Shown: positions 3,482 to 48,064, numbered from the stretch's first letter. The stretch: DNA of 48,078 nt from Chlorokybus atmophyticus (GCA_009103225.1 RHPI01001292.1:417633-465710), one strand, 5' to 3'. The notes: generated by a model not told the origin, from the sequence alone. Made by a program: numbers and translations.

Positions 3482-5454
3482 CAAGCAAGCATACACCGGT
3501 GGGCACACGCTAGCAACCCTTGCTAACCACCACCAAGCTTGCACACAAGAAACTAGGGAGCTAAAGGTTGTATTGCAAATTGTAGAATGTCACTTTTATA
3601 CCTACCAGTCTGCACATGCTACTGTCTAGACGATTCTAGCGCTAGACGGACCTAGAAGCTAAGATATTCTTGCAGAATCTTGTAGTACACTTCTAGACCT
3701 TTTCAACGCACCAAAGATCTCCTAATTTGCTGCTCATATGGTCAAGTTATACTACTTGGCGCCAGGCCCTTCCAGAAATCTGGTCGAGCCCTTCTCGACT
3801 GGCCCTCCGTTTTCTGGCACCTTCCGGACTGGTCTTGGGGCCCCGGTCGATATCCGCGGCAGTCTCATAACTCGCCGATATCCGCCACAAGTCATTAAAA
3901 ACATGTACCTTACAAATAAGGCCTAAAACGGCCATGAAAATCACAGAATTTGGCCTTGACTGTTACAATGCTTATCTATTTGTACGCAGCAGGGATATCG
4001 ATAAGCGCTCGGCATGGCCTAAATGAACTAGGCCACCAATCCAATGGGGCCACACCAAGTAGGCAGCGCGTCGCGCCCATGGATTTTGCATCCTGGGCTT
4101 TAAAGCAATTGCACTCAACGACTGTGCCATGATTGTGTTTGTGTAAAAGCCTCGCGCCGAGCACGCGCGTTGATGAAACTTGCCTATCTGACAAAGTGCG
4201 TGGAAAAAATTTCAATTTGAATTTCACCGATTCCTATTCATCCCACGCCCACGAAGTCAACCCCAGCCATTCTTAAGGAAGTGTCCCCCCCAATCGTGCG
4301 ACGCGCTTTAAGGGAAACACTACTCACTTCAATGCAGCTCAAATGAAATAGCAAAAGCTATCTTCTGGCAAATGCAGTTGATTGCAAATATGTATATATG
4401 TACACTTACAAGGACAACTCCCCTTCAGAGCTTTGAATCAGTGCAAGATGGTTTGTAAACATTAAGCGCATGAACACAAGCTGCTACTTCTTCACAAGGA
4501 CTGCACACGGCTAACTATAGGTAAGCATGTCGCTGTCGGTCGTGGTTTTTGGGTGAGCCGCAGCACGACACAGCACCCACCCAGGCCCAGCGGCCAAGCG
4601 GAAGCCTAGAGGCCACCTCCTCACAGCCGCCAGCTGCAGGCGTGCAGCAGTACGAGGCAGGCAGCTGCTGCTGCGGTGTTGCACAACCGTGGAGGAAAGT
4701 CGGACTTGTGGTGGCAAACGCAGCACAAGCAGAAGCCAGCGGCCCGCCACTGCCGCTGCTGCTGCCGTTGCCGTCGTCATAGTCACAAGCTGCAGGCCAG
4801 CTCGCCACCCTCGCTGCCCTCGCCGCCGCCCCCACCACGCCACGCTATGGCACAAAACAGCACAACAAAGTCTCTACACTGCAAGCATGGGTACCATGAC
4901 TGCACGCATGGGAAGGGCGTGAACACGAGAACAACAGAAGTTTGCGCCAAGCTGCTGTAGCTGTTGCAAGCTACATTGTATGATAGTCGACGGCAGTCGC
5001 AAGCAGTAGCAAGCAACTGTAGCAGGCAGCAGCAGGCAAAGGCGACGTCGGTAGGGGGAGGGGGGGGGAGCTGCCCTCTCGCCCAGCATGCGCCACATGT
5101 GTACCCCTTGCTGTTCGCGGCTCTGCAGTGTCGGCGCTTTGCATGTTGTGCGAAGCTGTCCAAGGGCCCCCCTGCGCGTTGAGCTTGCACGCGGGAAGGG
5201 AGTGTGACAGCGCAGTACAGTGGGTGAACCACGAGTAGCTGCGGTTGTGTATGCGAGCACTTGCCATTACGAACCACATCCGCTTGTGCAGCACCAATGC
5301 GCTATTGGCGCATTTCAGCAGTTACAAGTACATGGCTACTCACAATACTCGAAACTACACAACATGTATCATCCGCTATACATAGATCGTGGATATCTAC
5401 AGCTACAACCAACACGTTAATATCGCGCATATCCTTTGAAGATGCGCAACAGCT

Positions 5455-8400
5455 TTACCGCTGCTGCTTTTGCTTGTGGTAATAACTGCAATGCATACAA
5501 ATACTTAGCAATGTTGGAAACAAACACGCCCAACCCCTCCCCACCCCGTCAATAGCAAATGCATGCAACTATTACTCACACAGTGACGGGTATGCCGTGC
5601 CTCGTTAGACACTTGCGCACGATGCGTTCGGTGGCGTACCAGTCCCCGATGCGCAGCATATGCACAGTGGCTGTCATAAGCACAACATCAGAGACGATCA
5701 CAAACCACATCACAGCCCCAATCACAATAATACACGCACCCTTTTTCTTGATTGCGGCGGCCGCCAGCCTCCGCAGCGCGGCCTTGAGTGCATCCGTCAG
5801 CACGTCGCTGCGCGGGTTACCGGCGTGCCTGCGATCGTACCGCTGCGCCACCGCCAAAGCAGCATACACCTCCACCTTACCTGCAATTGACACACAAACA
5901 CACACAAGATGAGGTGGGATGAACACGCAGTGTGGCTTCACACACACACACACACACACACACGTACACTATACTGTACGACAGTCGTTGTACCGTCTAT
6001 GGGTGTGGGGACGAGGTGTAGGTCCCCAACATGGAGATCCCCGGCGGTATGCGCGGACTCATAAGCGGCCTGCAGGCCCGCGAACGCGCGGTCCCACGCA
6101 GCAAACATGCCTCCTCGGCCCCACGCCCCCGAGTTGTCCACCACACTACCACCACAATGACCATCAACACGCACGCAGGCAGGCAAAAAACACACACACG
6201 TCCGCGCACCCATTCACCTGCACGCGCACGCGCTCAACACACCTAACAACAAATGCCGGGCCATCGGTGGAGTCCACAAACGGCTTTGTGGCATCCCCGA
6301 CAACGTAGTTGATGTCCACTTCCTCCTCTTCACCCCCTCTCTGCTCCTCCTCCTCCCCCTCTTCATTGGTGAGCGGCAACGCGCAGCTGCTGTAACCCAA
6401 CGCTTGCCACTTGGACGCAAGGCGCGCGCGCTGATCGGACTCCCTCTCCACATCCGTCATCTTGCGCTTCTTCGGCGGGGGTGAGTGCAAGTGATAGTCA
6501 TGGAGTTGGGCTCCTCGTCGAGTGACCAGCGTCGACACAACGTCACGCATGCCCCCCCTTTGTGTCGACACGTACTCCTCTATAGCCGCGCGGTCAATCG
6601 CATAATCCTTCCCCTCAGAGTATTGCACGCCGCCAACATGTGTTGGACGCTGTTGTTGTTGCAGTTGTTGTGGTTGTAATTGTTCTTCGCGTGGTTGTGC
6701 GTAGGGTGCAGCCAGTATAGTTGTGATGAAAGACGCTTTGCCCCGCATCGCCAACGCGCCCTTCACGCTCTCAAACATTGCCGCCGCGTCCTCGACTTGC
6801 GGTTTATACCCTTTCAGGTGTTTGTGTGCCGCATACTGCACCATGTGCTGCATCTCTTCCGTTGATAGCTCCGACACAGCATCGGCATTGTTACTAGCAA
6901 TAGCGGGGCCGAGGATGTTGGAGCCGATGTCGGCGAGTGCGAGTTTGCGTTGGGCACGCGCGAGGATGACCTCCTCGAGCGTGTGGGCCGCAATGATACG
7001 CAGAGCCAACACTGCTTTGGATTGGCCTAACCTGTGAGCACGCTGCAATGCATTTATGTCGGCGTGCGGGTTCCAATCACTCTCGTAGAACACCACCTGT
7101 CGCATGTGTGTGCGTGTGAGTTTGCACGCACATGCGCGCATGTGTGCGTGTGTGCGTGGGTATGCGAGCGCATGCATGCATCTGCATGTTTGTGCATGCA
7201 CGGGCATGCGTGCGCGTATGTGCACAAGTGCATGTGTACATGCGTGTGCGTGCGCGTCACATCGGCTGAGAGGGTGACATGACCACCCCACCCACAGAGA
7301 TGACGCAAACATATACAACACTTCATCTCCAACATACCGTGTCGGCGGCAGTAAGGTTGATGCCAGCAACACTGGCACGCGTGCTGAGCAGGTACACCAT
7401 AGGAGCAGGTTGGTCCGGCTTCTTGTGGTTGTGGTTGTCATTGTTGTTGTTGTTGTCATCCAACATATGGCACTCCTCTGCCCGTACGCTCCCGTCCAGG
7501 CGCTCATACGGCCACCCGCGCAGATGTAGATAGTCCTGCAGGATGTCGAGCGTGCGTGTCATCTGCGCGAAGAGCAGCACCTTGTGGCCTTCTGTAGGGT
7601 TGTTGTTGTTGTTGCTGTTGAAGAGGAGGGTGAGGAGGGAGTCCAGAACCAGGAGTTTCCCGGACACGCGAACCAAGTGCTCACCCAACTCAAACGGCTC
7701 AGGCTCGAAACCAGGGAACATGTACGGGTGGCTGCAAGCCTTGCGCAGCTGCATAAGCTGCGTGACGATAACCAGATGTTGTAAGAGCAAAACACACGCA
7801 CACGTATCAGCACGCTCGCGTGCACGCACAGATTGTTTTTATAGACACACACGTGCACACGTGCACACAAACACACAGAGAAAGACAGGAACATACAGCT
7901 ATACCGTGTTTTGCGACGTTGTTGCCTTGCCACCGTTTCTCATGATACTCGGAAGCTGCCTGAGCAGGATACTCCTATACACCTCAGCTTGCATCGGCAC
8001 CAACGGAGCATACCTAACAAGATAAACCACCGTCAAGCACAACAACACAATGTCGAGACCTATCAACGACACCATGAAACGATATGAACACAATTGCCAT
8101 ACAGTGTGACTTCAGCGAGTGGCGGGAGGATAAGCTGTCCCCCTCGCACGAGCTCATCTTTGCTTCGCCTCAGCACAAACGCTCCCAAACACTCTTTCAA
8201 CTCATCCGCATGCTGCTCGAACGCTTCCACGAACATCTCCTCATCATAGAATATGTTGGGATTCATGAAATGCAGCAGCGCAAAGAGGTCGCTCAGACTC
8301 CCGTTGTTGATGTTGTGTTGCGTGGTGGGCGTGGCGGTGATGAGCACGCGTCGCGGGATCATGTAGTCCAACATGAGGGTTGTATAGAGTCGACCCGAGG

Positions 8401-9617
8401 GGTTTTTGTGAAGGCGATGGGCCTCGTCGATGATGGCGCAGCGCCATCGGAAGCGAGAGAGGAATACTGCATCGTGCATCGCGAGCTCGTAGGAGGTCAT
8501 GAGGACATCGAAGGGAAGGACGGGGTCTTTCTGTTGGGATGTTGATGTGATGATGCGTGCGTGCGAGCGTGCGAGCTGTGCGAGCGTGTCAAGGAGTTAT
8601 ACCGGGTGGCCTTACCTGTTGCGATGTGGGTTGGGAGCGGATATGTTTGACCAGTGCCTCTCGTAGGCGGTATCGGTGCAGGCGATCCCCGACATACTTG
8701 AGTCGACGCACGTGCGGCGCCCACCTCATCAGCTCCCCCTCCCACACGTCCACCACAGAAACAGGACACACCACCACTGCACACACATACACGTGTATGA
8801 ATACACCCACACACCCCTCCCACCACACCCACACACCCACACCCACTCACAGAAGGGCCCCCGCTGCTGCTTCACAGGGTGTTCTCTGTCCGTCAAGGCA
8901 CTGTTGTTGGCACCACTGTCGTCGCGGTCGTCCACTTGAACGACATCGTCCTGTGTCTCGGACAGCATGTGCGCCATCATGGCCACCCCCAGCAGCGTCT
9001 TCCCGGTCCCCCCCTCGTCCGCGACCATGGGGTTGACTCCCGCGCGCAATCGATCCATCAGCCAGGCCAGTCCCTCGCGCTGGTGGGGCTTCAGGAGGGC
9101 CACCACGCCCCAGCCCCAGATGCGCCAGCCGGAGGAACCGAGAGGGGGGACTACGGAGCTGAGAGAGAGTGTGATGATGATGATGATGATGATGATGATG
9201 GTGATGAGAGACAACAACAACAGATTCACACTATCAAGAGTGCTGTTGGCGCAGCTGTTGAGAGCTTGCGTGAAGCATGCACGGGCACAGTCATTTTGGC
9301 GTGGACAACACAGCGATTGCAGAGAGTGTTGAGCGGACAGGAATGCTGCTCCGCTCGCAATGTGCCAAACGAACGACTGCACGGAAACCCAACGGCATGC
9401 ATTGCGGTCTTTGGTAACGACATTTTTCAAAAAACATAGCTACTATATGTCACTGAAACAACACCCAAACAGGCACAATACCCTTGATAAACCTAGCGTT
9501 ACCCTGTCTGTGTATGTAAGTTTGCCGCCCCATTGCTCACCTGCATCGCCTGGCGACGCGTCCCAGCCATTCCCTATACGCAGCGGGATCGTCCACAGGC
9601 TTCCTCAGCGCACCCAT
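5455..9617 (-). CDS. CHD1L: CHD1L/ALC1-like SNF2-family chromatin remodeler with C-terminal macrodomain (multi-exon)
   Basis: Spliced fragments give [12 protein letters not shown]...ADEGGTGKT (motif I), IIDEAH (II), ITATP (III), the CHD1L-typical [32 protein letters not shown] (VI), and macrodomain segments [22 protein letters not shown] and [19 protein letters not shown]. Probable ATG at 9617 (exon 1 ends 9541 and splices in phase). The last exon 5485-5455 encodes [10 protein letters not shown]. The start codon is less certain than the body. Confidence 0.9.
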
Positions 9618-11761: not shown

Positions 11762-14700
11762 TTATGGTAGCTGCTCTTGAGCAGCAAAGGGAATGGAGAA
11801 GCATAGCGTATCAGCCTGATACATGCCTTCCCCGTGTCCACCCTGCACGCACGCGAAAGCGTTGTCCTCACCCCCAAGCACGAAGCCAACATGCTGGTAG
11901 CGTGCGGGCGTGACGGGCGTGGCGAGAGCCCACACGTCGGACTCGACGTGGTACTGCCACAACTCGTCGATCTCCTGGCGGGCGTCGTTGGACCCGCCGT
12001 GCACGAGAATGTAGCCAAGGGCGGGGTGCGCGAGGGACACGTGGGCGAAGCGGCCCGCGCCAATGCCCGTGAGGAGGGCGAGTGTGTCGTCCTGCACGCG
12101 GTACGCGAAGAAGTCATCCGAGTAGGTCCCGATTGTGGTCACGCCGCCGTAGAAGTACACAGTGCTCTCGTATACGGCCGCAGAGTGGCCGAAGCGCTTG
12201 CCCGCAGGCGCGGCGTCGTCCAACATCACGGGGTTGAGGCGTGTCCACTCGTTGTTGGCGATGTCATAGGACCAGAAGTCATCGAGGATGTCACGACCGG
12301 CACGCCCACCATAAACCACCATCACGCCTTCTTCAGCCACAACCGCGGCGGCGTGGTCGAAGCGCGGGGCGGGAAGGCTGCTGTTGCCACGCTGTTGAAC
12401 AAACTCCCAGGTGCTGTTGGCAAAGCTGAAGGCCCACACGTCGCCAAACACGTACGTGCTGCGCTCCCCGCCGTACACGTACATGGTGTCTTCAAACACC
12501 ACCGCTGTGTGCGAGTAGCGTGGTGGGGGCGCGGGGCCCTGTGTGGCCACCTGCTCCCATGCGCGACCCATCCTGAACTGAACCTGCATGTCCGCCACGC
12601 TGCTGCCATTCACCCTTGCGGTGGACACCCACACAGGCTGCAGCGCAAGGTTCACCTGCACGCCAATACAACTCATGAGTCAAACTAACAAGATGAGAAG
12701 AACTGCTCGAGACAAGGACAGACACTATACAACAACACAACAACGTGTCTTACCTTAGCGACGCTGATCTCATCCCAGAAGGCGTGTGCTGGGAGGTGGT
12801 TGGGTGCATCAGCGGCGTCATCAAAGCCAGCAATGCCGGCGCTGAGGAAGACCTTGTCGATGGTGATAGCCTCGGGCTTGGTCATGACCACAACGCCATC
12901 GATAAGCAAGGTGGTGCCGGTGGAGTTGCTGCGCACCTCCAGCTGGCGCCATCCCGCTGATCGACCGGACTCAGTCGAGAGCCATGGCGAGCCTGTGGCA
13001 TACATGCTGGCCGTAGAGAGCGTGTACACGCCCACAGCGGTGCTGTAACCAGGCTTCTCACCGGGAAGCAACAAGCGCTCCCCATCGGCGGTCTCCGTGC
13101 ATATATCCCAGTCAGGGCTGATGAAGTGGGACGCCGTGCTCGAGTCCGAGTCGTAAAATTGAGCCCTCATCACAAAGCTATCCATGGGCTCGATGGTGGC
13201 CTCAAGTGCTCCCGCCTCGCCGTGCTTGGCGTAAAGGCTGAACTCACCCGTGCGAGGAAGCTCTTCGCTCACCATGAAGTTGTCACCCGAGGCGGGGTTA
13301 ACACCACACGGAGCTGCGGGAACCAACGCGCCGGTGTCACCGGCCTCGAAGCCCTCATAGAAGGCGAACACGGCCTCAGGTGTTGTGGGGTTGCTCATGT
13401 GCGGGTTGCCATAGTACATGTGGAGCTCGGCGTCGTCCGTGGCGTCCATCATGGGGATGGCCACCCAGTAGACTGTGTCGGAGGAGCCGCACGTCCATGG
13501 GTCCACATAGTACGCGAGGGTTGTGGACACGCCGTCGATCTTGAAGGCAACATCCATGCAGTCTTGCGCCATGACACGCTTCGACACCATGTCAGACGTG
13601 TCAATGTGGATCTCCAGTGTGGCATCGGCCATAAGGTTCTCAGACACTGCAGCAATTGGCAAACACGATTAGCAGTGAGTCCACACAAACAGCACAGCAA
13701 GTAAGTCAAATGAGGCGTTTACTCACCCTGGAAGGCAATTGTCTTCTTGTAGTAGAGGGTGTCATCTGCAACAGATGAGCCGGGCAGCATCCACATATCA
13801 TTGAGGTATGACTTGTCGTACGCAGCTCCGCCGAACACGTACACGGCGTCGGTATACACAACGGCGCTGTGCTCGAAGCGCTTGAGGGCCATGGGGAGCT
13901 CCCCGGCGTCATCAGTGGCAACCTCAGCCCAGTCCGCCTCGATCACGTGCAGGTCCTCGTTGGGGGCAGGCACGCTCACGGCGTCTGTGGCAGCGTGGAA
14001 GGTCATCGTCATGGGGCCGGTGGTGGGTGCCACCAGCGTGAAGCGGTACATGCCGTGGCCGATGGACATGACCTCGCTGCTGCTGTTGTTGGACAAAGAC
14101 ACAACAAGGCCGCTGGACACGTCACGGTCATCGATCACGTTGCCCTGTGCAAAAGATACACATTGGTAAAGAGCGGATGCACATCTTGAAGCAATATATC
14201 AGCATAACATTGAATCAACATCAACATGTGACATGCATACCGCAGCGTCCTTGGCGATGATGTCAATCGTGAAAGGGATGCCAGCAGTGGGTTGAGGGAT
14301 GTCACCCACAAGCTCCCACATGGCGAGATCTCCCGCGGCGATGTTAAGGACGAAGGGCTCCATGTTGAGGGGCTGGTCACCTTGTGCGCCGAGGAGCACA
14401 ACATTGAGGAAGTACGTGCCGGTGGTGCTGATGTCATAACCTGCGCGCCACACATCTCCTGGGCACGGGGGCTCGAAGGCATGGTCTGTCACGTACAGGC
14501 CCTCAGGGAGGTCTAGACCAAGGAGGGAGCGGCGCTTATCAGTGTTGTTGGAAACGCTGCCATAGCACGCGTCCTGGTCGGGGCAGACAACAGCGGGGGC
14601 ATGTTGGACAGCGGGTTGCTTGTCGAGCAGCGGGTACTCCACGCTGCCGTGCTCGTCAGAGAAGTACTGAACAGAGAACTGCTCGGTGGTGATGGCGAAG

Positions 14701-17700
14701 CGAGCATCGCGGCCGAGATAGCAGTACTTGCAATCGTCCTTAGCCTGAATTATGACGGTCTGCTCAAAGTCGCTGCCGGCACGCGCATGCATGAGGCCGC
14801 TGCCGCGCACGACACTGTACTTGGCGCTGGCAACACCCACACCAACCTCAGGGAACGCAAGCTCCACGGGGCTGTCGGCCATCCACTCAGGGGCGACGGG
14901 GGCGTTCTGCGGGTTGAGCGTGCCCTCAAGGCAGGTCTTGGTGTAGTCACCGACCCAACAATCGGAAGCGTAGCCCTTAGCCACCTCCCCGGCACCCTCG
15001 TTTAAGCTCCAGTAAGCAGCGATCTTGTCCAGCTCCATGTATGGCGGGCAGTGCATCGTGTCGGCGATCTCCTCGGCCGTGCGGGCAACCTTCCACAGTT
15101 TCACCTCATCGATGTAACCGGTGAAGCCCAGGCCGATGTTGAGAGGGGCATGCAGGTTGTTGCGAGCCACACGCCTGGCGGTGTCAAAGGTCATGTCCGC
15201 AGCCTGCGCGCCGTTGATGTAGAGCGTGAATGTGGTCTGGTTGTACACAGCGGCCACGTGGGTCCACTCGTTGGTGTTGGTGTAGTCCACGGTGATGGTG
15301 CGCCACTCGCCGTTGCCAACATACACATTGGCGATGAGCTCGGTGAAGTCAGCGTTGAACTTGAGGTCGTAGCTCTTCGAATCCGAGGCAACGTTGTCAT
15401 GGCTCTTCTTGTCCAGCACGTAGTGGAAGGCATGCGTGGCAGCTTGTGCCTGTAGCAGCTTGCGACCGCCAGCCTCTGGTGGAGGAGGAGCTGTTGCACA
15501 TACAGACACAAACACGAAGTCAATACGTCACACAAACACAGTTGCACACGACACAATATAGACACACAGCAAGGCAAGAGTGGAACCTGGCGTGGGAGGG
15601 GGAGGTGAGGGTGGAGGGGGGCTGGGAGAGGGTGGAGGGGGGCTAGGTGGTGGAGGTGAGGGTGAGGGCGGGGGTGGGGAGTTTGGCGGCGGGGGAGGTG
15701 GTGAGGGTGTGATGATGGCCTCGGGCTTCACCCAAGCTTCCATGGTGAGACCGTGCGTCGTAAGGCCAAGCTGGCGGGCATCAGGGACCTCCACGCTGCT
15801 CTGGCCGTTGAAGTACAGAGAGCTGCCGGCGGCAACCTCCACGCACACGTCCCTGAGGAACGGCTGCGGGCCGCTCGTGGTGTTAATGGTGCCCGTGAGC
15901 ACATACTTGCCCATCACCTGAGGTGTGTACGTCACGAGGTACTGGCCGTTCTGCATGTCCTCCACCTCCGCGAGGATGTCGTGGGGGCCCGTGAGAGACA
16001 CGAACACGCCATCACCGCCTATGGTCCTCGGGCAACCGGCGGCGTCGCGGGCCTGCACTGTGAATGTGGTCTTCACGCCAGCGGCGTTGGCAACACCGAA
16101 GGCGTCGGCGGGGTCGGAAGTGGTTGTGTCGGGGTCCGCAGCGCCGGGGATGATGGGGGTGACAAAGGTGCCTGCGCACTGGTCACCAAGTGCGACGGTA
16201 ACATTCCAACCGGTACACGCGTTGGGCAGCGGGCTGATGTACACGCCATAGGTGCCGTCCTGGCTGTCGTAGATGCCGGCAGCTGTGGCAATGTTGTCAG
16301 AGCCCGCGAGCGTGGCGATTACGGAGAAGTCCTCTCCGCCATTGAGCCGCCGCGCGTAGCACTTGGTTCGGGCAGTAATGGTAAAGAGAGCAAAGGTGCC
16401 TGACTCTACAGAGATCAAGGCGGGACCAACCAGCTCGGTGGCCGCAGCAAAGGTGAGGTCATCATATGAAGCGTTGGCCCACAGGTTGCCATTGCTCATG
16501 ATGAGTGGTGCGATGTCAGCGCTGTAGAATGCAGGGAAGTCCCCAACACTGGGTCCGTCACCCTCGGTCATGGCCCAATAGTGGGTCATGTAGTCTGAGC
16601 GCATGGGGGAGGTGGGGCTGCTCTCGGGTGTGGCCCACCCAAAGTGGCTGATCCTGCCGGGGCACCGCACGCGCTCCTTCATCAAGAAAGCGGGCGTAAA
16701 GCCGGCGCTGGCAAGGCCGTCAGGCATGAAGCCTGCAGGGAGATCAGACATGTCCACATCGTGCTCATCTCCGCGCAGAGCCTCGTCCGTGATGCCAACA
16801 CCCGTGATGAGGCCGTTGAATCGTTTTGTCTCCTCGGGTGAGCCTTCAGGGAATTCCTGGCCAATGAGGAGGGGAGCGTCCGAGAATACAATGGCGCGGG
16901 CCTCGTCCATGATCATCTGCTTATCCTTGAGGATGCCATCGACGTAGAAGAAGAAGGTGGCCCCATCGGGGGTGAAGATATACGAGGCTGCGATGTGCTG
17001 CCACATGCCTTCCAACACGGTTGCACGCCACGACGCAACCTCTCGGTACACCTCGCATGGCTGGCAATCGCAGTCAGTGTACACCGCCAGGTAGACGCGG
17101 TCATCGTGGATGCCGAAAGCCACTGAGGAGTGACCATCTACAAGCACACGCACAAGAGTTAGTGGTTGGGGAACTTAAGCCACACATCCATTGCGCAGCT
17201 ACACAGTTAAGCGGGTACTCACCGGCAAGAGGCTTGGCGAGGATGGCCTGAGGGCCAGCAGTGGAGTAGGGATAGATCCATGCCTCAACAGTGAAGCTCT
17301 CTGTGGGGAAGGATGCCTCGGAGGAGACAGTCACGCTGGGGTCAAGGGTGAAGTCGATGGCGTACTGGTTGGTATAGTACTGCGCTTGGATCTCAATATC
17401 GTTGAGGGCGCGAGAGTAGATGCGCAACTCGTCCATGCGGATGTTCAGCCCTTGCAACACCACGCCTCCCAGGTAGAGAGCCTGCATGCCAGAGTTGGTG
17501 AAGGGCACGAAGGATGCGTTCCCTGCCATCATGCCGTTGATGTACACCATCTCGCCGTCCATTGCGGACACCGTGCGCGTGACCATCTGGTATTTGCCAG
17601 CCACAACGCCCAAAGATGCCAGGTTCTGCGCAGCACCCATCTGCAAGCAACAGTCACCTGAGGTTCCATCCGTGTTGTACCAAGAATGCACGCTGTGTGA

Positions 17701-20700
17701 GCAACAAGAGAATGGGTGCTTACCATCTGGTCGTACTCAATCGACATCCACATGGAGATTGTGTAATCGCCCTCAAGGTAGTCCATGGGGGTGGGGAAGG
17801 TCATGTTGGCATCACCGGTCTGAGGGCCCATAATGATGGCGCCGTTGTCGATGGCGTTGCGGTCCTTTGTGAAGAACGACAGCGCATCGTTGTCGCCGAT
17901 GACGTATGCGGCGTGCCTTTCGTTGCCGGACACATCCACAATGGTGATCACTCCGTCGGTGGCCAGGGCGTCAGCGTTCAGGTTGAACGTGTAGTGGGCT
18001 TCAAGGCCTGAGCTCAGCCCGGGCTTGACCATGTACTCCACTCCAGACGCACCCAACTCGGTGGAGCCGGTGAGCACCATCACAGAGCTGACAGGGCCGG
18101 CCGGGAGGGGAGGCTGCGTGAGCTCCACGCGACGGCCGTCGTGGGTGATGGCATCAATAGGGATTATGTGGAAGCTGCTGGTGTCGTTTTGGGTGATGTC
18201 TCCAAACACGGCGGTCAACCACTTGCTGGGAGCGAAGTTGGTGCCCATGAGCTCGACGGTGTTTCCGTCCTTGGTACCCTCAACAACTCCAGATGTGAAG
18301 ATATAAGCAGGCTCCCACGCACCCGTCGACTGCACAGTGTGTGCATCCATGACTTCCAAGTCAGCGGGCATGCTGGCGGAAGAGGTAGTCTTGCCATCCT
18401 CAGAGACTTGAGAGAATTTGTAGTATGCAACAAGGTCAGCCTCGTCGCCCTTGAGTGCGGCGAATGTGTACATGGCCACCTCGTCCGCATTTAGGCTCCT
18501 GTTGAACACCTTCACCTCGTCCACCATGCCCTTGAAGAACTCTCCGGGCGTGGCGGGGTCCATGCTCTTGTAGTCCTGGCACACGCTGAAGGTGCCCGCC
18601 ACATCGGGAGCGCACACTGTGGTGAAGCGGCCCGCAAGCTCGTTGTCAACATAGAACCTGCCCTCACCGGAGCCGTCCACGGTGACGAACACGCTGTGCC
18701 ACTGCTCGGGGGCAGCTGTTGCGCCAGTCTGTAACACATCCCAACATGATCAGCACATGCGTGTTTTAAAGATGCTGCATGATATCACTGGAGAACAGAC
18801 GAACAGACGAACCTGAATGACATCCAGGATGCAGTCATCGTAATAGAAGAAGCGCTGGCCGTCGTACATGATGAGAGCGGAGTTCTGCTTGCCGGTGGCC
18901 GACTCGAATGAGAGCACACTGGTCGCATGAACCTCATCAGGCAGAATGGGTCGCTTGAAGCCGAGCTTGTCACCCTACCACAAAGACACATAAACATCAG
19001 CACACTGGGTGCATATGTGTACATGTGTTGGGAGGGGTTCCCTGAGGATAAGCACTCACCAGCATGGAGCGTGCGCGTGTGTTAGCTGCGGGCTGCAACT
19101 CGGGCATGGCGTGCGGGAGAACCCACGCGCCCACAGAGTAGCCGTCAGTGCCGTTCAAAAGGGCATTGACCTCAGCGTTGGCCGCGGTGGCGTAAGAGCC
19201 CACACCGTCGCAGTCCAATGCAGCCTCCGTGACCTCCCATGGCACGCCGTATGCGAACAGAGGGTTGCTGATGAAGAACTCAGAGGGGCGGGGGTTGGGG
19301 AACGCTGCCGCGGGGCAGCTGAGAGTGCGGTCATCAATGCGGGTTGGCATGGACTTCCCGCGCGTGTCGCCGATGTACGTTGCCAAGGCGTCGCGCTGGC
19401 ACACACGCCTCTTTGAGATGGACCCAATCAAGCTTGTGGAGGCAGCATCACCCACGGCTGAGGCATCAATGCAACCCTCGGGATACCAGTCACCAAGCAT
19501 GCTGCTGGCATTTTGCTGCACGTTGCAAGTTGCAGTCAGTAAAGTGATTGTGTTGTTGTGTAGAAGTGCAAGAAGTGTGGTAGGTGACTCAGTCTACACA
19601 CCTCGCATGTAGTCCAGTCCTGGTATTGCACCGACCAGCCCCAGCCGCAGTTGAGCCACTGAGAGGGTGCAAAGTTGAAGCCGATGACCGACACCTCTTC
19701 ACCACCGCCCATTGAGCTCCGAGGCATGTCAAAGTCGGGAGTTTTCTCCTGAAAGCAGTAGCAGCATCAGCAATGTGTGTGCATCATTGCTGAAGATGTG
19801 CACATGCGCCTCAGTGTATGCGCGTTTGCGTGCATGTGTGCTCTTGTCATCTTACCAGCACATCCTGGCCATTGATGACATAAGTCCAAGTTGGTTGCCA
19901 GGGCACAGCGTAGAATTCGTATGTGGGGTCGGCGGCAAGGGAGGTGGCAGAGGCGATGCCGGCAGGGGCGTAGTCCTTGAGGCTGTTGGTGAAGCGCATG
20001 TGCGCTACGAGCGTGTATCGCGTGTGGTCCCACCGTGGTGATAACGGGTGATCAAACATGGTCTCAACGAGGTCGCCACTGGACAACATGCCGTTAAACA
20101 CTCGCAACTCGTCCATCAGACCCGTGAAGTTGCCGGTTGTCACCTTGACAACCACTGCAGAACGCACGATACAACATTTGAGTAACCAGTTGTTGTTCTC
20201 AAATGTGATACAAAGGAAGAGACATTGCATGTGTGCTCACAGTTAAAGGTGCTTGGAATGACTTCAGAGGTTTGCACTCCTTGCGAGTAGACAGCAATGC
20301 CATCAACATAAAACACAAAGTCGGTGTTGTGGATGGCGAGCGCAACGAAATGCCACTCGTTGGCAGCGTTGATGGTCTCGCTGCCACCTTGCGGGCTGCA
20401 CAACCACCAACAACACGCATGAGATACATACATACATCAGTGCCGCACACAGCATGAGAGGCGTAACAGACGTTGTTACCTGTCCTGGCCGGGAGTGGCG
20501 AAGACAAACATGCCATATTGGTAGGAGATGGTTCGTGTCAAGCCGATGCCGCCTGAGATGGTGAACAGCAGCTGGTTGTCGTTGTCATTGTTGGGAAGGA
20601 CCCACGCAGTAAAGGTGAGAGCGCGTTCAGTAGCGGCGTGAATCTGGCCACCTGCTGGAATTGTGAGCTCAATGGTTTCCGCGCCCGTGAGACGCACGAC

Positions 20701-23700
20701 CTTCTCCATGAAGATGTCGGTGGGGGCCGCGTTGACCACCATCCCGTCGTTGGAGATGGACAGACCCGCGAGCTCATTGGCGAAAGGCACGATGGGGCTC
20801 TCCTCGCAGGTGGCTGAGGCGAAGCCGGAGGTGTATACGTATGTGTCCTGGCGCTCGGTGTTGGGGTTGCTACGGAAGAAGCCAGCAGCCGCAATCGCGG
20901 TGACCACATCATCGAGCGTGAGGACATTGCCGTTGGCATCAGCGACCTGTGCGGAAGCAAGGCCACCAAGGGTGCTGTCGGTCCAGTGGAATGGCTGGTT
21001 CAGGCTCATGTACTGCAGCACGGGGTCGTGGAAGTAGTCATCGTAGAAGCGTGGGAACTCGTTGGTGGCGCGAGCCTGGTATGGCATTGCTATGGTGCTT
21101 GAGTCTGATGCGGATATGGCGCAGGACAGGAACGGGCTGCGTGCGATACCCACGGCTTTGATGGATGCTGTGTTGGGCTCATTGACGTGATACATGTTCT
21201 TCCCATCTGGCGCGGTCAGCGTGGGGGGCATGAAGGGCGCAGGCGTGTAAGCATACTTGGCATGCGTTGGGAAAGAGGTCCCTGCGAGGGAGAGCCAGTG
21301 GTGTTATTCAGACTCAATAGTGCCTTGTGTGAGCAACAAGGCTCTAATCATAGGCTACCACTTACCGCTGAAGTAAATCCTGTCGTTGTCCACATCGGTG
21401 GTGGCGGTGACATTCTTGGCCCAGTTGCGCATGCCAGCAGTGTAGCCGGCCTTGTCGGTGACATACCCAAGGATGGCAGGGAGGTTGGCTGGGTAGTCAG
21501 AAGCGCGGTCAAAGGTGGGATCCTCCATCTGCAGCGACCGACATGTAAGGTTGTTATCTCCAGGGTGACCCTACAAACTGATGTACAACATGGCAGAACA
21601 AACTACCTGCAGCAGGCTGCGGCGGCGGCCTCCAGCCTCAGGTGGAGGAGGTGATGGATGGGGAGGAGGAGGGCGGGGAGGCGGGGGGCTCGGCCTCGGG
21701 GGAGGTGGGGGGCTGGGAGTCGTCACAGCTGCAAGTGTACATGTAAGTCAGCATGTTGTTAGCTGGTAGTTTGTTGGTACCGATCACACAACAAGGAAGC
21801 ATCATGCGGCACTGACCTGGAATGCCCTCCTGGCAGGGGTTGTTGAAGCGGGCCCACAGGACGCGGCCGGCAGTGTAGTCAAGCTGAGTGCCGCGGGAGG
21901 CCTCAAGCTCGCGTGATGGTAAAAACAGTGGCATCCTGAACATGATCTCTTGGATCTCAGGCGTAGCCACGAAGCGGTTGTACACAAGGACCTCATCGAT
22001 GAACCCGTCGAAGCCCACAAATTCAAGACTGGGGCACGCCAAACCGATCTTGAAACTGCAGCAGCTGTCCTCGACGGAGTTGTCGGCCTCGGCGTAGCCA
22101 CTTGGCGGCAGCGGGATCATGGGCGTGCATATAGGTGCCGGGGGCGGGGNNNNNNNNNNNNNNNNNNNNNNNNNNNNNNNNNNNNNNNNNNNNNNNNNNN
22201 NNNNNNNNNNNNNNNNNNNNNNNNNNNNNNNNNNNNNNNNNNNNNNNNNNNNNNNNNNNNNNNNNNNNNNNNNNNNNNNNNNNNNNNNNNNNNNNNNNNN
22301 NNNNNNNNNNNNNNNNNNNNNNNNNNNNNNNNNNNNNNNNNNNNNNNNNNNNNNNNNNNNNNNNNNNNNNNNNNNNNNNNNNNNNNNNNNNNNNNNNNNN
22401 NNNNNNNNNNNNNNNNNNNNNNNNNNNNNNNNNNNNNNNNNNNNNNNNNGGGAGGGGGGTGGGGGCGGGGGAGATGGTGAGGGTGGAGGAGGCGGGGGAG
22501 AGTATGGAGGGGGCGGGGGCGGGAAAGTCAGAAGCCTGAGAGCATGATGACAGTTAACACCCAGGCATGCGTGGGTGCCCAGGCATGGGTGTATTATCAG
22601 CACACGCTCACCTTCGGCCACCGGCTTCAGGCGGGGGCGGTGATGGCGCGGGAGGGGGTGGGGAGCTGGGTGGCCTGTTGAGGCACATGTTGGGGTACAT
22701 CTCCGTGGAGAACTCAGCAACCACTTGTCCGTCAACTGAGTGTCACAAAACGGCATTAGAGACATTGCTTGTAGGGCACTAGGACACATACAAATATAGT
22801 TGGCACTCACCGTTGAGAGCGCCAGTGCCATCCTCCTCAATGGAGACCATGGCGTGGTGCCACATGTAAGACTCATATGTGCAGTTGGACCAGAAGCGGT
22901 CGGTGCCATCGTAGACACCAAAGCGGTGCTCAGAATTGTGCCAGAGCAGGACAAGCTTGCACTCGAAGCGGATGAGGACCTGCTCCTGGGCGGGCTCGCG
23001 CTCCTTGATGGCCAGCTGTATGCAGTAGAAGGGCGTGGCGGTGATGAGGTAGTTGTCAAAGGCGTAGAAGCAGACCTGCGCGAGGGAGGGGCGGTTATCC
23101 ACGTCGGGTGCGTCGGGGCCCCAGTGGAAGTCCCGGCTGCCCTTCTGGCCCAGCCCGCTGCTGCTCACACCCATGTCCGTGAAGGGCGCAAGGATGGCCC
23201 CATCGGGCAGGCCCGTGGTCTGGATGGACAAGTCCGTGCACGCATCGGTGTCCTCAGCAATGACCGTGAAGTCGAAGCTCTCACCGCGATATTTGGTGAT
23301 ACGGGGCACATTGTACTCGTTGAGGCCGAGGGCCGCTATCCACTTCTCCACGCCGGGGTTCTTGTTGGCATCGTTGGTCACGATGAAGAGGGGCAGCTCG
23401 TTGTCCTTGCAGGCGGAGGGGATAGGGACAACCTGGCCGTTCTCGCTGGTGCCACAGTCAAACTCACGCCCGCTTGACTCAGGAGGCGGGTCACAGAAGG
23501 TGTAGTTGTTGGCGCCCATTCCACAAATTGTGCATTTCTGCTGGCCGTAGATGCCGTCACTGTCGGCAAAGGTTATAATGCCCGCCACGTTGGTGATGCA
23601 GTTGCCCCCGCAGAAGTGCAGGTTGCCCGGGTACAGGTAGAGCATGAAGTCGAGGGGCACCTTCACCTTGTCATCGTCCACCATCACCACCATGTTGTAC

Positions 23701-26449
23701 AGGCCCATGCGCAGCATCTCGTCTTGCTGATCCTGCTTCCACGTCTGCCACACCACTAGTCCGGGCACCTTCGCGTCTGGTGCGAAGGACAGCGACGTCT
23801 GGGGGGTCTGGAAGGGCGTGCGATCATTCGGGCATCCATCGGGTTGCCCATTGCCATCCCTGTCCTCGTTGTACATGAACTGCACGAAAGAAAAGAGAGT
23901 ATGGGTGTGTGCATGCGTGCGTACGGAGAAGGTTGTGTATCACTGACCATTGCAATACGACAACAGCAATGCACACAGCCAACAACAGCCATGATGATGA
24001 TGACAGACAACACAACGTACGCTGTCGCAGTCAAAATTGCCGTAGCGAGCCTGACTGCGGAAGACGCCGTCGGCCTTAGAGCGGGTGATGCCGCCCATCT
24101 CGGTCTGGTCGCCGAAGCGGAAGTTGAGGGCGAGGTTGTCCTGGGGGTCGAGATCATATGCAGCGATCTGGAAGCGCGCGTAGTTGGGATACTCAATGTG
24201 CATCACGGGCAGCACGGGAATCTGCGACACGATCGGGGACCGATTGCCGTCTCCTGTGACCAGCACCTGCACTTCCAGCCTGAACCGCCCCTCCGCATTG
24301 TTATTTAGCAGGTAGTCCAGCTCCGTCGGACACACGCCCGGGTTGTTGTTCCACGCGACGCCGCACTCGTAGATGCGGTCTCCACCTGTGAAGTAGGCCG
24401 TGTACATCGGCGCGCCCGTCCCACCATAGTTTGTAGGGGGAGCCGTCTGAGGCCTGGAGGGCAATGTGTTGATGCTCATGCGACCTCACGCCAGCAACAA
24501 GCATGACGACACAACGATTGTGATGACATGTGCGCTTACGTGTAGGTCTTGGTCCACTTGGAGAAACCACGAACGTAGTTGCCAGTGATGAGGTTGCTCG
24601 TGGTGTCAACGGTGTCGAGCTGCATGATGACGTTGTCGGCCCCACCATCGCCATAGAAGAAACCGTACACCTGCACGCAGCGACTGTTGAGAGAAGGGGT
24701 ACTGTGTTGTGTGCATCAGCACTTGATGTCGAGTTGAGTGCGTACGTACCTGAGACCAGGGTGCGCAAAGGTTCTTGTTGGTGACATACGCGTTGTTGGC
24801 AGACCCGCAATCAGACGGCAGCTGGTTACCCGGTCCAGGATAATCGCAGTGGAAAGGTGTCGGGCACTCCGTCACGATGCTTTGATCCTGCACCACACCC
24901 ACAAGTCAGCACCCAACACATTTTCATATACAAGACTAGTGTCATCATCACGCACCGCGTACACAGAGTAGGGAAACTTGACGTAGAACCAGGTCTCCTG
25001 CGGCGTGAAGTTGGGGTTGATGTTCTGGCAGCCGGCGCCGTTGGAGGCAAACGTGGATCCGGGGGGGCAGGTGAAGCAGCCAGGTTGGCCAGGGACACAG
25101 TTGCTAGGCGTGCGCCAGAAGTTTTCTGTGCCATGCCATGACAGCTGGTCGTCAGGGTCCGGGTACGTGGCGCTGTTGGTAATCTGCCACTGCTCCCTGA
25201 ACCATTTGCCCCACTCATAATTACGACGGAACGCCGCACGGAATGTGAACTCCACGTCGAACGACTGGTCGGGGTTCACCCCGCCCACCGGCGTCCAGCT
25301 GATTGTTCCATAGCGAAAATGTGAACCTGCTCACCACACAAAGGGCACAAGGGTTACACCTCACTCTCAACCCATCAGCAAGCATTCCCATCAAACAGCG
25401 CACAAGAGTGGTTGCTTGTGCAGAACCTCCTGAAACCCAACTCACAAGTGCACAGACCACACATGCACAATGCAACACCAACCACACTCCTTGCCCCCCA
25501 CCCCCGGCCTACTCACACACTCATGCAAGGATGGCCTTAGGGTAACAGAAAGTTGGCTTGCCACTGCTAGTACTCAGTTGAGCATTGGGATTTGCTGACG
25601 GTCACTCACCATGCAACTGCAATGGTGTGCGTTGTGTGCAGCTATGTGATGCTTAGTGGGTGGGTGNNNNNNNNNNNNNNNNNNNNNNNNNNNNNNNNNN
25701 NNNNNNNNNNNNNNNNNNNNNNNNNNNNNNNNNNNNNNNNNNNNNNNNNNNNNNNNNNNNNNNNNNNNNNNNNNNNNNNNNNNNNNNNNNNNNNNNNNNN
25801 NNNNNNNNNNNNNNNNNNNNNNNNNNNNNNNNNNNNNNNNNNNNNNNNNNNNNNNNNNNNNNNNNNNNNNNNNNNNNNNNNNNNNNNNNNNNNNNNNNNN
25901 NNNNNNNNNNNNNNNNNNNNNNNNNNNNNNNNNNNNNNNNNNNNNNNNNNNNNNNNNNNNNNNNNNNNNNNNNNNNNNNNNNNNNNNNNNNNNNNNNNNN
26001 NNNNNNNNNNNNNNNNNNNNNNNNNNNNNNNNNNNNNNNNNNNNNNNNNNNNNNNNNNNNNNNNNNNNNNNNNNNNNNNNNNNNNNNNNNNNNNNNNNNN
26101 NNNNNNNNNNNNNNNNNNNNNNNNNNNNNNNNNNNNNNNNNNNNNNNNNNNNNNNNNNNNNNNNNNNNNNNNNNNNNNNNNNNNNNNNNNNNNNNNNNNN
26201 NNNNNNNNNNNNNNNNNNNNNNNNNNNNNNNNNNNNNNNNNNNNNNNNNNNNNNNNNNNNNNNNNNNNNNNNNNNNNNNNNNNNNNNNGGGGGCGGGGGG
26301 GGGCTTCAAACGGGGTGAGTTGTGAGAATTCAGGTGTGAAATACACGCAAGTACGCACCTGCTGTGAGCTGCAGGAGGCCTAGGAGAAGCAGCCCCAGCA
26401 GCGGCCAAAGGCGGGGCGCCATTGGCGGGCCGCACCGCAGCAGCCTCAT
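11762..26449 (-). CDS. Giant secreted multidomain protein (signal peptide, LamG/ConA-like x6 or more, IPT/TIG x3, filamin-type Ig, Kelch, DUF2341-like, Ser-Pro rich), about 3,500-4,000 aa, >20 exons
   Basis: Exon 1 (26449-26359) encodes MRLLRCGPPMAPRLWPLLGLLLLGLLQLTA and splices in phase to 25326 (GSHFRYGTISWTP). Long minus-strand ORFs with GT..AG junctions follow down to the stop at 11762. LamG motifs: FTVEAWIYP, WQHIAASY, EWTHVAAVY, FTGYIDEVKLW, MDELRIYSRAL. IPT motifs: VSVIGFNFAPS, VELMGTNFAPS. Filamin: TFTVQARDAAG...GGD...VEDMQNGQYLVTYTP. DUF2341-like: DVAF...LAYYVDPW...YWVAIP...MYYGNP. Kelch: PRYSHTAVV..MYVYGG. Length is estimated; gap 22150-22449 lies inside a Pro-rich exon. Confidence 0.88.
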
Positions 26450-32735: not shown

Positions 32736-34884
32736 TGCGTGTATCCACTCAATCGCTGGCAGTGCTGGGATAACGTTCACACTTGCACATTAACTACTCC
32801 ACTTGTAGGAGCATCCTTGGGTTGCACCTTTCCGCGCAGCTGAGTGATGGCGACATAATCTTGATCCGTCTGTACAAACATGTAAGGGATAGGTTGTCGT
32901 CACTGCTGCCCCCCCCCTCTCTCTCTCTCCCCCTCTCTCTCTCTCCCCCTCTCTCTCTCTCACACACAGTGTGCAGAATCAGCAAACAGCTTGGGTTAGG
33001 GGCTTGAGAGGACGCACTTGACAAGCCAGAGGTGGCTGGATGTCAGCGGGGTGATGATTCCAAGACATGGAGCAAGACTGGCATCATGCTAGCAGACCCC
33101 CCACATCCGCAACAACATCGCCAACCACTGCCTGATCTCTTGTTTTACTATAGAGCCAGGCAGCAGCCAAGTAATGGCAACGCTAGCCAAGTGCACCATC
33201 CTCCGAGTCTACACTGTGTGTTGTACAGCATTACAGTACAACAAGTGTGTATGCTTGTTATGTGTAGTGCCACCCTTTGCTTCTGGTCGTTTTGTGTGAA
33301 AACATCATATTATTATCAAGTTACAACACGTCCCGCACTCTGAACGTGGCACCCTCATCTGTGTTATCGCAACAACAGCACGAAATGCGCGATATTGGAT
33401 GTGGGGCGCAATGTTGTCGCAGGATGTTCGCATTGGCAGGAGGCTGCGGCTTACGGCATGGCGCGTATGCGGTTGCTGTATGCAGTAAGCCCAACGCTCG
33501 AGCTCCCTATGAGGGTATAACCACGATTCAACTCATACAATATATATACAAGTGGCTGGCTGAACTCAATGTAGGCCAAACAAGCCAGTATTCGGTAGGC
33601 CCGCAGCCCTCGTCAATGCTGAACTGCCACACATTTATCAAGTCTTGGTAGGCATGGAGGCGATTGAGGAGTGGGTACCTGCACACGTGTATCGGGAGGT
33701 CAGATGGGTGGTAGCCCACACTTGCGCACATATGCAAGCTTACACACAGTATGCAGGCATGCACGCACACAGACTTCTTATGCTTGTTACTTGCCCTGAG
33801 GGTTGTTTATGTCAACCGCTGTCGTCCGCAGTGTCAAGTTCAAGGCTGCCGGCGTCAATGTGGGCCTCTTCTGCACCAGGAGTGCCGCCACTGCTGCAGC
33901 TTGTGAAGCTGCGGCTGACGTCCCATGTCCCACACCACGAGTGCAGTTGGACCACTGCATCTGGACACAGCCGTTGGGTATAAGCGTCCTGCATATTCAC
34001 GTCATGTCAATGCAGCTCTGTCATCTACTACTGGATTTGTGCGACGTGTGAGCAGCCATCATACCTGGTGCCATAGTGTCGAGCTTGCTTATGAGGGGCC
34101 AGGGGTGGTAGCGTCTCCCCGCCAGATCACAGAGCAACAGACTGCCACCAAGCTGAAGGTCTCAATGCGGAATGCGACGCTTGCTGAAAGGTGGGGTCTG
34201 CCTGTAGCTGCACAAGCCACGATAAGCAACATGCGTTGTTGGTACGCATGTCGAGAGTGAGCGTCGATCAATTGTTCGATGGTGTGACGACATCTCAACT
34301 CAGCCATCTCACTGCGCAGTGTCACGCCCACCAACGCTTCAAGTGTGGAACCTCCGGTGGCTTGTGACATCAAAAGACATGTGCTCAACAAACAAGGATG
34401 CGCAACACAATGCCGAATAGTAACTCGTCTTACTTACTCACCCACTTGGCGGGCTTCGTTGCCCGCAGCCGTCTCATAAAGCACCTCCCGGTTGAGGTAC
34501 ACCTCGTCGATGGCTTGGCCAATGACGCGCTGCATCGAAACATCGGCTCTGCAAGGCAGTGAGATTCGCGGCATGTAAAGTGAGGTGAGTGATTGGTTGT
34601 AAAACACGACAAACAACAAGCAGACTGCAAAGTGTACATGTATGCATAGGGTTATGTCGATTATGATTATGTTACAGTTGGTGTTGGCGTATGCTTGAAT
34701 ACCCTTGGTACACGCCGCCTCCGGTGGCAGTGTGAAAAGACAGGAGTGAGCTCGGTGCAACGCCGTGAACCTGTACATACGTGCACACGGTTGACTTGCG
34801 CGTGCCCATATGCTGGCTCGCGTGCGTGGGCTTGTGCATGTGCACATGCGTGCACTCGTGTGCATGCGAGCTGCTAGGGGCACG

Positions 34885-47993: not shown

Positions 47994-48023
47994 TTAGGGT
48001 TAGGGTTAGGGTTAGGGTTAGGG

Positions 48024-48064
<41 letters not shown>

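Follow-up and report, generated by a model that had tools for sequence, protein, structure and literature searches.

We analysed a window of 48,078 nucleotides (nt) from the green alga Chlorokybus atmophyticus (GCA_009103225.1 RHPI01001292.1:417633-465710); throughout, the window means this whole stretch of DNA. Its minus strand carries, at positions 11762-26449, a gene for a giant lectin-type mosaic protein into which tracts of Ser-Pro repeats are inserted. Splice modelling and comparison with homologues show this interval to be one intact predicted gene of 23 exons.

Gene structure and domain order

The gene model was obtained with a dynamic programme that scores codons and splice sites, and was then curated by hand against a Chlorokybus paralogue, P0100. 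The coding sequence comprises 11,811 nt, including 300 N, and is translated into 3,936 residues, of which 101 are X. All of the introns are GT..AG and each is 68-141 nt long, except for intron 1. Two public models were found to cover the same locus. P0001 (EukProt/JGI Chlat1 Chrsp115S01666) matches residues 1-786 of our model at 100%, and P0130 (Chrsp115S00763, 3,012 amino acids) is 99.8% identical to the model from residue 925 to its end. The sole discrepancy with P0130 was one acceptor 15 nt upstream, which has since been taken over, such that acceptor 17137 was adopted over 17122, in agreement with both P0130 and P0100.

Similar agreement was seen with homologous proteins. In tblastn searches, seven giants (P0100, P0002, P0003, P0004, P0005, P0016 and P0102) were colinear along the window, with P0100 spanning 25360-11783 and P0002, from Mesostigma, spanning 25330-11831. 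A three-way alignment of the gene product, P0100 and P0002 was continuous from the signal peptide to the C-terminus. Thus, homology is end-to-end with P0100 and P0002, and partial and colinear with five other giants, including a protein derived from an MMETSP transcript. Because the introns are GT..AG, the public models agree with ours and the homologues are colinear, the interval is best read as one gene. The original prediction, an earlier note on this DNA, had likewise proposed a single minus-strand gene.

The public annotation cuts this gene into two models (786 and 3,012 amino acids) at an assembly gap. Taken as annotated, the locus would hold two genes, one for a 786-residue secreted N-terminal protein and the other for a 3,012-residue LamG/Kelch protein, as P0001 and P0130 are separate public models and the sequence between them is unread. 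However, P0001 terminates by reading through into a TGA that lies within the intron 7 donor (gtgagc), and P0130 begins at an internal Met (22120) in the middle of LamG1, without a signal peptide. In addition, the paralogue and the homologues of five other genera are single proteins that are uninterrupted at the split point. The presence of two genes is therefore highly improbable.

The annotation split spans window positions 22120-22735, and both model ends are assembly-gap artefacts. The gap at 22150-22449 is coding and falls in a Pro-rich loop of LamG1, such that the N-terminal half of this domain lies upstream of it and the C-terminal half downstream. The 300 N are an assembly placeholder, and in-frame reading across them carries no meaning. 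In the homologues the two halves of LamG1 are contiguous (P0100, q743 to q799; P0002, q763 to q817), which supports the order and strand across the gap. Since the loop, even with the gap set to zero, is no shorter than the corresponding loop of the relatives, homology leaves no room for a missing domain. Another gap, at 25667-26288, falls in intron 1, between exon 1 (donor CAG/gtgcgt, phase 1; the slash marks the splice junction) and exon 2 (acceptor cag/GTTCAC, 25326). The join of these exons is in frame (...LQLTAG-SHFRYGTISW), is also used by P0001, and corresponds to ...LQLAAA-SHFRYGTISW in P0100, which has no added residues. Thus, this gap appears to hide no exon. Exon 1 contains two in-frame Met codons, at 26449 and 26422 (MAPRLWPLLG...); the latter aligns with M1 of P0100 and may be the true start.

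Domains were called with Pfam gathering cut-offs and, in addition, with self-profiles built from family members. From the N-terminus, the predicted order is signal peptide, SHFRYGT-type N-terminal domain, Cys-rich/cadherin-like region, LamG1, three units of TIG-like domain, spacer and LamG, and LamG5, followed by two filamin-like units, LamG6, a third filamin-like unit, and a Kelch propeller of one plus five blades with a DUF2341 and ConA-like insert. The features of the gene are as follows, in the direction of transcription, with (-) for the minus strand.

11762..26449 (-), whole gene, 23 exons, with stop codon TAA at 11762-11764 (own splice model)
26359..26449 (-), exon 1, start codon(s) and signal peptide; identical to the P0001 N-terminus; only hydrophobic segment
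25327..26358 (-), intron 1, 1,032 nt as assembled, holding gap 25667-26288; GT..AG, phase-1 join
24021..25326 (-), exons 2-5 (25326-24956, 24887-24750, 24670-24540, 24453-24021), SHFRYGTISW domain and conserved FTGGDR / LLNNNAEGRFRLE / GDGNRSP / EMGGI region (family alignment)
23028..23879 (-), first part of exon 6, Cys-rich and cadherin-like beta-sandwich units, residues 389-672; no Pfam match
22674..23027 (-), LamG1 N-terminal half (end of exon 6 and exon 7, 22735-22612); self-profile 673-769, conserved WHHAMV...VDG...YPNxC
22451..22676 (-), Ser-Pro tract 1a, GGRR and LL, and tract 1b running into the gap; intron 22611-22536 splits RR from LL
22150..22449 (-), coding gap in the LamG1 Pro-rich loop; CCN-rich flanks on both sides, homologues uninterrupted
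21817..22149 (-), exon 8 past the gap, end of the Pro-rich loop and LamG1 C-terminal half (CCSFKIG...FDGFIDEVLVYNR); self-profile, alignment
21607..21728 (-), exon 9, Ser-Pro tract 2, ending in EAGGRRRSLLQ; canonical splice sites, frame-preserving, in P0130, conserved in P0100 and P0002
21100..21261 (-), TIG-like unit 1; self-profile E 9e-19
20066..20730 (-), LamG2, over exons 11-13; self-profile E 1e-27
19626..19927 (-), TIG-like unit 2; self-profile E 4e-20
18474..19245 (-), LamG3; Pfam Laminin_G_3 E 7e-16, self-profile
18189..18344 (-), TIG-like unit 3; self-profile E 4e-20
17428..18083 (-), LamG4; Pfam E 2e-12, self-profile
16761..17412 (-), LamG5; Pfam E 1e-10, self-profile E 7e-54
15897..16403 (-), filamin-like units 1 and 2; Pfam Filamin E 2e-11, 45 bits, self-profile
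15705..15836 (-), LamG6 N-terminal strands, up to MEAWVKP; self-profile
15444..15704 (-), Ser-Pro tract 3 inside LamG6, ending in PPPPEAGGRKLLQ; interrupted by intron 15586-15491
15063..15443 (-), LamG6 C-terminal part; Pfam Laminin_G_3 E 9e-19
14514..14537 (-), fifth basic-Leu-Leu tag, DKRRSLLG, with no preceding Pro tract; aligned with FRKLLS (P0100) and SRRHLLG (P0002)
14004..14285 (-), filamin-like unit 3; self-profile E 5e-13
13767..13877 (-), Kelch blade 1, apart from the other five; Pfam Kelch/attractin-type on open reading frame (ORF) 13722-14198, self-profile
13321..13542 (-), DUF2341; PF10102 E 1.3e-13, 51.6 bits against a cutoff of 23.4
12754..13374 (-), seventh ConA-like jelly roll, after DUF2341; AlphaFold2 (AF2) model, VIA, Foldseek
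11885..12571 (-), Kelch blades 2-6; PF24981 E 1e-42, 147 bits, self-profile

The LamG, filamin, DUF2341 and Kelch modules scored above the Pfam cut-offs. Laminin_G_3 (PF13385) reached 260 bits over five stretches of P0130, against a cutoff of 27.6, and was matched at the level of single exons too. One filamin/ABP280 repeat (PF00630) scored 45.1 bits (cutoff 26.9), two further units being found by self-profile only, and Kelch (PF24981 / PF01344) scored 146.9 bits (cutoff 50), with six blades by self-profile. In all, the self-profiles detected six LamG domains, three TIG-like units, each of them before a LamG, three filamin-like units and Kelch blades 1+5. The three TIG-like units found no match to IPT/TIG (PF01833) even at E 10; the homologous unit in another Chlorokybus paralogue, P0135, scored 21.8 against a cutoff of 20.9. 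We therefore name the units TIG-like only. A clostridial neurotoxin receptor-binding N domain was matched below threshold (E 0.02-0.03) at P0130 473-536 and P0100 1253-1294; we read this as generic LamG-like jelly-roll similarity, with no relation to toxins.

The predicted Kelch propeller is split into one and five blades by the DUF2341 and ConA-like insert, with blade 1 at residues 3287-3323 and the other five at 3663-3891; equivalents were found in P0100, P0081 and P0004. The exon between blade 1 and blades 2-6 was modelled by AF2 as DUF2341 plus a ConA-like jelly roll (predicted local distance difference test score, pLDDT, 82; predicted template modelling score, pTM, 0.85). In VIA comparisons the ConA-like model gave Z scores of 12-14.7 to GH16 glucanases, ERGIC-53/legume lectins and CBM66, and a Foldseek search gave a similar result.

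The N-terminal region was harder to assign. In the family alignment of its first domain, S5, F7, R8, Y9 and T11 are invariant. The SIBA-E_N profile (PF24907) gave 17.8 bits with the gene product, against a cutoff of 28.1, and matched six of seven family members, with a best E of 4e-8. An AF2 model of the N-terminal 365 residues, built from seven sequences, had a pLDDT of 46 and was excluded from the fold search. Residues 389-672 are called cadherin-like by pattern only. A HMMER search returned 80 hits, including repeated matches to query residues 207-324, and an exon of the gene matched P0001 at 98% identity. Pfam searches with the upstream exons (19000-25500) gave no match at E 0.01, and sequence searches of PDB with the N-terminal profile, the DUF2341 exon and residues 389-745 returned nothing usable.

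Apart from the signal peptide at its N-terminus, the protein has no hydrophobic segment, and no transmembrane segment was found. The part of the protein that can be read has a mass of 416 kDa, an isoelectric point of 4.5, 65 Cys and 22 N-glycosylation sequons. As predicted from the gene model, then, the product is shown to be a secreted, acidic, anchor-less mosaic of about 420 kDa. These results agree with the original prediction in its size estimate of ~400 kDa, in its signal peptide without a C-terminal transmembrane helix and, almost item for item, in its inventory of LamG, filamin, DUF2341 and Kelch modules, all four of which exceeded the Pfam gathering scores of their hidden Markov models, with LamG, filamin-like and Kelch units recovered by self-profile as well. 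Its three IPT/TIG-like units were also recovered as three by self-profile, but without a Pfam match within the gene.

Ser-Pro tracts and the basic-Leu-Leu tag

Ser-Pro tracts were found at three places, as four segments, at residues 765-814 (running into the gap), 1028-1066 and 2747-2801, which agrees with the three Ser-Pro(3-5) tracts that had been predicted. They are found in linkers or in the loops of LamG domains, and each of them closes with GGR(R/K)(x)LL(Q). As repeated Ser-Pro(3-5) in a secreted protein, they are of extensin type. The Tyr cross-link motif YXY is absent in and beside all of the tracts, where only a single Tyr occurs (PPPPPPYSPPPP).

CCN-rich sequence is free of stops in any frame, and our first automatic splice model excised tract 3 via TGG/gtgaag and ctacag/. 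This raised the question of whether the tracts could be in-frame intronic or low-complexity sequence mistaken for coding sequence. However, the flanks (AWV-K/S/W-P...; GGR-R/K-LLQ) are conserved as protein in P0100 and P0002. Around tract 3, MEAWVKPEAIITPSPPPP...PPPPEAGGRKLLQ aligns with MEAWVSPRGVTPSPPPP...PPEQSGRRRLL in P0100 and with IEAWVWPGEVTPLPPSPP...PPAGGRRRLLQ in P0002, and AWVxP is the usual LamG strand in the other LamG copies of the protein. Tract 2 is an exon of its own with canonical sites, and its loss breaks the frame. Furthermore, the tracts are present in the public models P0001/P0130. Because of the conserved flanks, the frame and the public models, the tracts are, from this comparison, coding, and an intronic or low-complexity origin is very improbable. 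A splice model with tracts 2 and 3 as introns was dropped on the conserved P0100/P0002 flanks, the frame and the agreement with P0130.

Introns lie in or beside the cassettes formed by the Pro tracts: 22536-22611 splits RR from LL at site 1, 21529-21606 follows LLQ at site 2, and 15491-15586 interrupts tract 3. These introns may bear on the origin or expansion of the cassettes.

The original prediction had described the tracts as native tracts of hydroxyproline-rich glycoproteins (HRGPs). The tracts are real; however, they appear as expansions of Pro-rich linkers that are already present in relatives, and they come with a conserved basic-Leu-Leu tag that had not been noted. Each of the Chlorokybus and Mesostigma proteins has 4-6 copies of R[RK]x?L[LM], compared to 0.1-0.2 expected from shuffled sequences, and four R-(R/K)-(x)-L-L motifs were counted in the gene product, compared to 0.1 expected. 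The tag was seen again in P0135 and P0107, both paralogues, as well as in numerous uncultured members, and is found at five aligned positions across the family. Of 10 members, 8 retain site 1 (RR[R/H]L), which is flanked by the conserved YPNxC and CCSF, and 7 retain site 2 (GGRRxLxQ), which follows NNPC; some of the latter have no Ser-Pro tracts. The third site, in a LamG3 loop past AWVLP, is degenerate in this gene (TRARSML), the corresponding sequences being RRRSLL in P0100 and GGRKLL in P0002.

RRLL and RKLL are the sites at which subtilisin-like proteases remove the pro-region of type-1 pectin methylesterases in the Golgi (PMC4008260, PMC7694680). The giant shares with these enzymes the tetrapeptide core, a secretory-pathway context and the streptophyte lineage (PMC4008260, PMC7694680). 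In contrast to them, it belongs to another family and has several sites, which follow Pro-rich tracts and lie partly in folded domains, and its cleavage is predicted only. From this resemblance, we infer that the tags are candidate sites for a secretory-pathway endoprotease of the RRLL/RKLL subtilase type; a protease of another class is also possible. A literature search for 'RRLLQ' found nothing relevant.

A possible sequence of events is that, in the lineage of Chlorokybus and Mesostigma, Pro-rich loops and linkers were expanded to Ser-Pro(3-6) tracts, which would be expected to undergo hydroxylation and O-glycosylation and so form stiff rods. Cleavage at the tags would then yield a mature product of several fragments. 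Because two of the sites are within LamG sandwiches, and site 1 is between conserved Cys, the fragments could remain joined after cleavage. We suggest tentatively that the Pro-rich and GGRR(x)LL(Q) cassettes serve as maturation sites built into the protein. A secretory protease of the RRLL type would cleave the precursor there four or five times, with the fragments held together by strand complementation or disulfide.

It is also possible, and we hold this equally tentatively, that the GGRR(x)LL tag is not cleaved, and that it marks the end of a prolyl-hydroxylation/glycosylation zone, is a binding or sorting motif, or forms a structural turn back to the LamG core. The tag always stands where an inserted tract meets the folded domain again, the Gly-Gly ahead of the basic pair suggests a flexible turn, and some variants are a poor fit to the protease consensus. 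However, it is kept at linker site 2 and at site 5, where there is no LamG core to rejoin, as well as in members without Pro tracts, and it closely matches the streptophyte processing motifs RRLL/RKLL (PMC4008260).

Family, distribution and surroundings of the gene

Profile and HMMER searches found at least three Chlorokybus paralogues, namely this gene, P0100 and P0135. Members from other named organisms came from Mesostigma (two, P0002 and P0107), Chloropicon (two), Cymbomonas and Pyramimonas, and there were many metagenomic members, one cluster of which holds 107 sequences. The main relatives are listed below.

P0100 (Chrsp29S04595), Chlorokybus paralogue, 3,807 amino acids
P0002 (Mv15517), Mesostigma, 3,956 amino acids
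P0003/P0081 (P0081 being A3770_04p31030, Chloropicon primus), Chloropicon, 3,414/3,440 amino acids
P0005 (CYMTET_42744), Cymbomonas, 3,150 amino acids
P0102, Pyramimonas obovata, MMETSP transcriptome, 5,078 amino acids
P0004 and P0016, uncultured, 3,645 and 3,970 amino acids

P0100, P0002, P0081 and P0005 have the same domain order as the gene product, with SHFRYGT right after the signal peptide and a split Kelch propeller that carries the DUF2341/ConA insert, and for P0100 and P0002 the homology extends from end to end. In the Chlorokybus and Mesostigma members, Ser-Pro and GGRRLL cassettes occupy the same positions as in the gene. However, identity to these four proteins is only 28-56%, and the Chloropicon and Cymbomonas members lack long Ser-Pro tracts. 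The public model of P0100 is short by about 45 residues between Kelch blade 1 and DUF2341 (P0100 ~3205-3212; window 13560-13727), which are present in the gene and in Mesostigma; the shortfall may be a missed part of an exon. Some paralogues and relatives carry added PA14, GLEYA and SUEL-lectin domains, which fit a glycan-binding/adhesion theme.

The profile and HMMER searches found no named member from land plants, core chlorophytes or Mamiellales, most of the matches being without an organism name. These searches place the gene in a family of early-branching green algae that is conserved, multi-copy and uncharacterised; the architecture is not unique. The family is undescribed yet publicly sequenced: its members are named only 'hypothetical' or 'LamG-like jellyroll fold domain-containing protein', and a literature search for the DUF2341/LamG/Kelch combination found nothing relevant. 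Thus, the original prediction that the architecture is unlike that of any characterised protein holds insofar as the relatives are all unnamed, although the architecture itself is common to a conserved family.

The suggestion that some modules were derived from prokaryotes found no backing. The next-best matches were bacterial LamG giants, over 1-7% of the family profile, and no relative was detected when the DUF2341/ConA exon was used to scan bacterial and archaeal genomes by pattern/tblastn. Since DUF2341 is shared by family members of both green lineages (Chlorokybus and Pyramimonas) and by uncultured ones, a transfer, if there was one, would have to be ancient.

The gene lies between an SNF2-type helicase gene and long terminal repeat (LTR) retroelement remains. 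At 8066-9439 on the minus strand, two ORFs match SNF2-related helicase domains (E 3e-21 and 3e-6) and are probably exons of a neighbouring gene downstream of the giant gene. Minus-strand retroelement remains were found at 3-2485 (Ty3/Gypsy-type gag and RVT_1) and at about 35355-38978 (Copia-type gag, Pol_BBD and RVT_2, the remains spanning 34437-38978). A telomere repeat, (TTAGGG)n with one TTTAGGG unit, occupies window positions 47995-48078, about 21.5 kb away from the gene start. The flanking retroelements and the telomere place the gene in a transposon-rich subtelomeric region.

Proposed function and significance

From its modules, the gene product probably acts as a secreted, glycan-binding scaffold of the extracellular matrix or of adhesion that is proteolytically processed. 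As an extracellular scaffold, its seven ConA/LamG-type jelly rolls, DUF2341 and propeller would bind wall or sheath glycans or partner glycoproteins, and its Ig-like units would serve as spacers. A role in wall, scales or adhesion, as in the original prediction, is plausible; one specific to scales is unlikely, because the family is present in Chloropicon, which we take to be scale-less.

Several observations weigh against this interpretation. Sequence and frame within gap 22150-22449 are unread, and the models give the N-terminal 670 residues no confident fold. The Ser-Pro tracts lack the YXY motif for Tyr cross-linking. Cleavage at the tags is suggested by motif resemblance alone; the third site is degenerate in this gene (RARSML), the variants GGRRLQQ and RRRLAS are a poorer match to the subtilase consensus, and RxLxQ/E is also similar to motifs that aspartic proteases cut in other eukaryotes.

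Another possibility is that the protein is not a structural scaffold of the wall or sheath and that it is an adhesin for cell-cell or gamete recognition, like FUS1/GEX2 with their filamin-like Ig domains. FUS1, GEX2 and the Sib proteins have a transmembrane anchor; in contrast, the gene product has none. Filamin-type Ig units and invasin-like matches would fit an adhesin, as would a weak match of P0135 to the GEX2 N-terminal Ig domain (E 8e-5, sub-cutoff) and the weak similarity of the N-terminal domain to the Dictyostelium Sib adhesion proteins (PMC3279395). However, the GEX2 and SIBA-E_N matches are under the curated cut-offs in the gene, and there are several paralogues per genome. Overall, a recognition adhesin seems unlikely.

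An enzyme is less probable still. In that case, the ConA-like domain would be a GH16-like glycanase/transglycosylase, or the Kelch propeller an oxidase, and the other modules would target it to the wall. The top structural matches of the ConA-like domain did include GH16 laminarinases/lichenases and the Crh5 transglycosylase (Z about 14), but non-catalytic lectins and carbohydrate-binding modules matched equally well. Moreover, the GH16 motif ExDxxE is not conserved, and no Glu is invariant or near-invariant in a 14-sequence alignment of the module. The Kelch region matches propellers of the attractin/KLHDC type rather than galactose oxidase and its additional domains. We therefore consider catalysis quite improbable.

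As a putative matrix or adhesion scaffold, the giant can be compared with several known systems. With the LamG_3 and DUF2341 surface giants of bacteria and archaea (e.g. P0111, P0113) it shares LamG_3, DUF2341, Ig-like repeats and a presumed role at the surface or in adhesion. In contrast, those proteins lack its N-terminal domain, its split Kelch propeller and its Ser-Pro cassettes, and match 1-7% of the profile. Animal attractin and MEGF8 mosaics, which provide the best Kelch model (PF24981), are likewise secreted proteins or ectodomains with Kelch and lectin-type modules. Their companion domains are CUB, EGF, PSI and C-type lectin, and their propeller has no insert. The Sib proteins of Dictyostelium are type I membrane proteins that carry a VWA domain and bind talin through their tail. 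The giant has no such membrane anchor, VWA domain or tail, and its weak likeness to SibA-E (PF24907; PMC3279395, PMC9197732) concerns the first ~30 residues after the signal peptide.

The Ser-Pro tracts relate the giant to chimeric extensins and HRGPs, which are likewise secreted and combine Ser-Pro(3-6) tracts with folded binding modules. Examples are Algal-CAM and the pherophorins of Volvox and the LRX proteins of land plants. In contrast to these proteins, the tracts of the giant are short inserts in the LamG loops and linkers of a lectin-type mosaic, without a long extensin domain; they lack YXY and end in the conserved basic-Leu-Leu tag. Long chimeric extensins have been reported in green algae (PMC10762512). 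The gene is a variant within known kinds of protein, giant lectin-repeat adhesins and chimeric extensins.

Almost nothing is known of the extracellular matrix proteome in the earliest-branching streptophytes, and a review of the green-algal matrix counts both the composition of wall proteins and their function among the open questions (PMC10762512). The family comprises secreted lectin-type mosaics of 3,000-5,000 amino acids that are common to Chlorokybus, Mesostigma and several prasinophyte-grade algae, and the gene is a concrete candidate for a sheath, wall or adhesion scaffold of these algae, in which extensin-type tracts are nested within folded domains. It also suggests a connection, open to testing, with the RRLL/RKLL protease code known from the wall proteins of land plants. 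If the cassettes are maturation sites, as we tentatively suggest, the protein would carry glycosylated rods hinged within lectin domains, and the RRLL/RKLL code of land-plant wall enzymes would already have been serving matrix proteins near the base of the green lineage.

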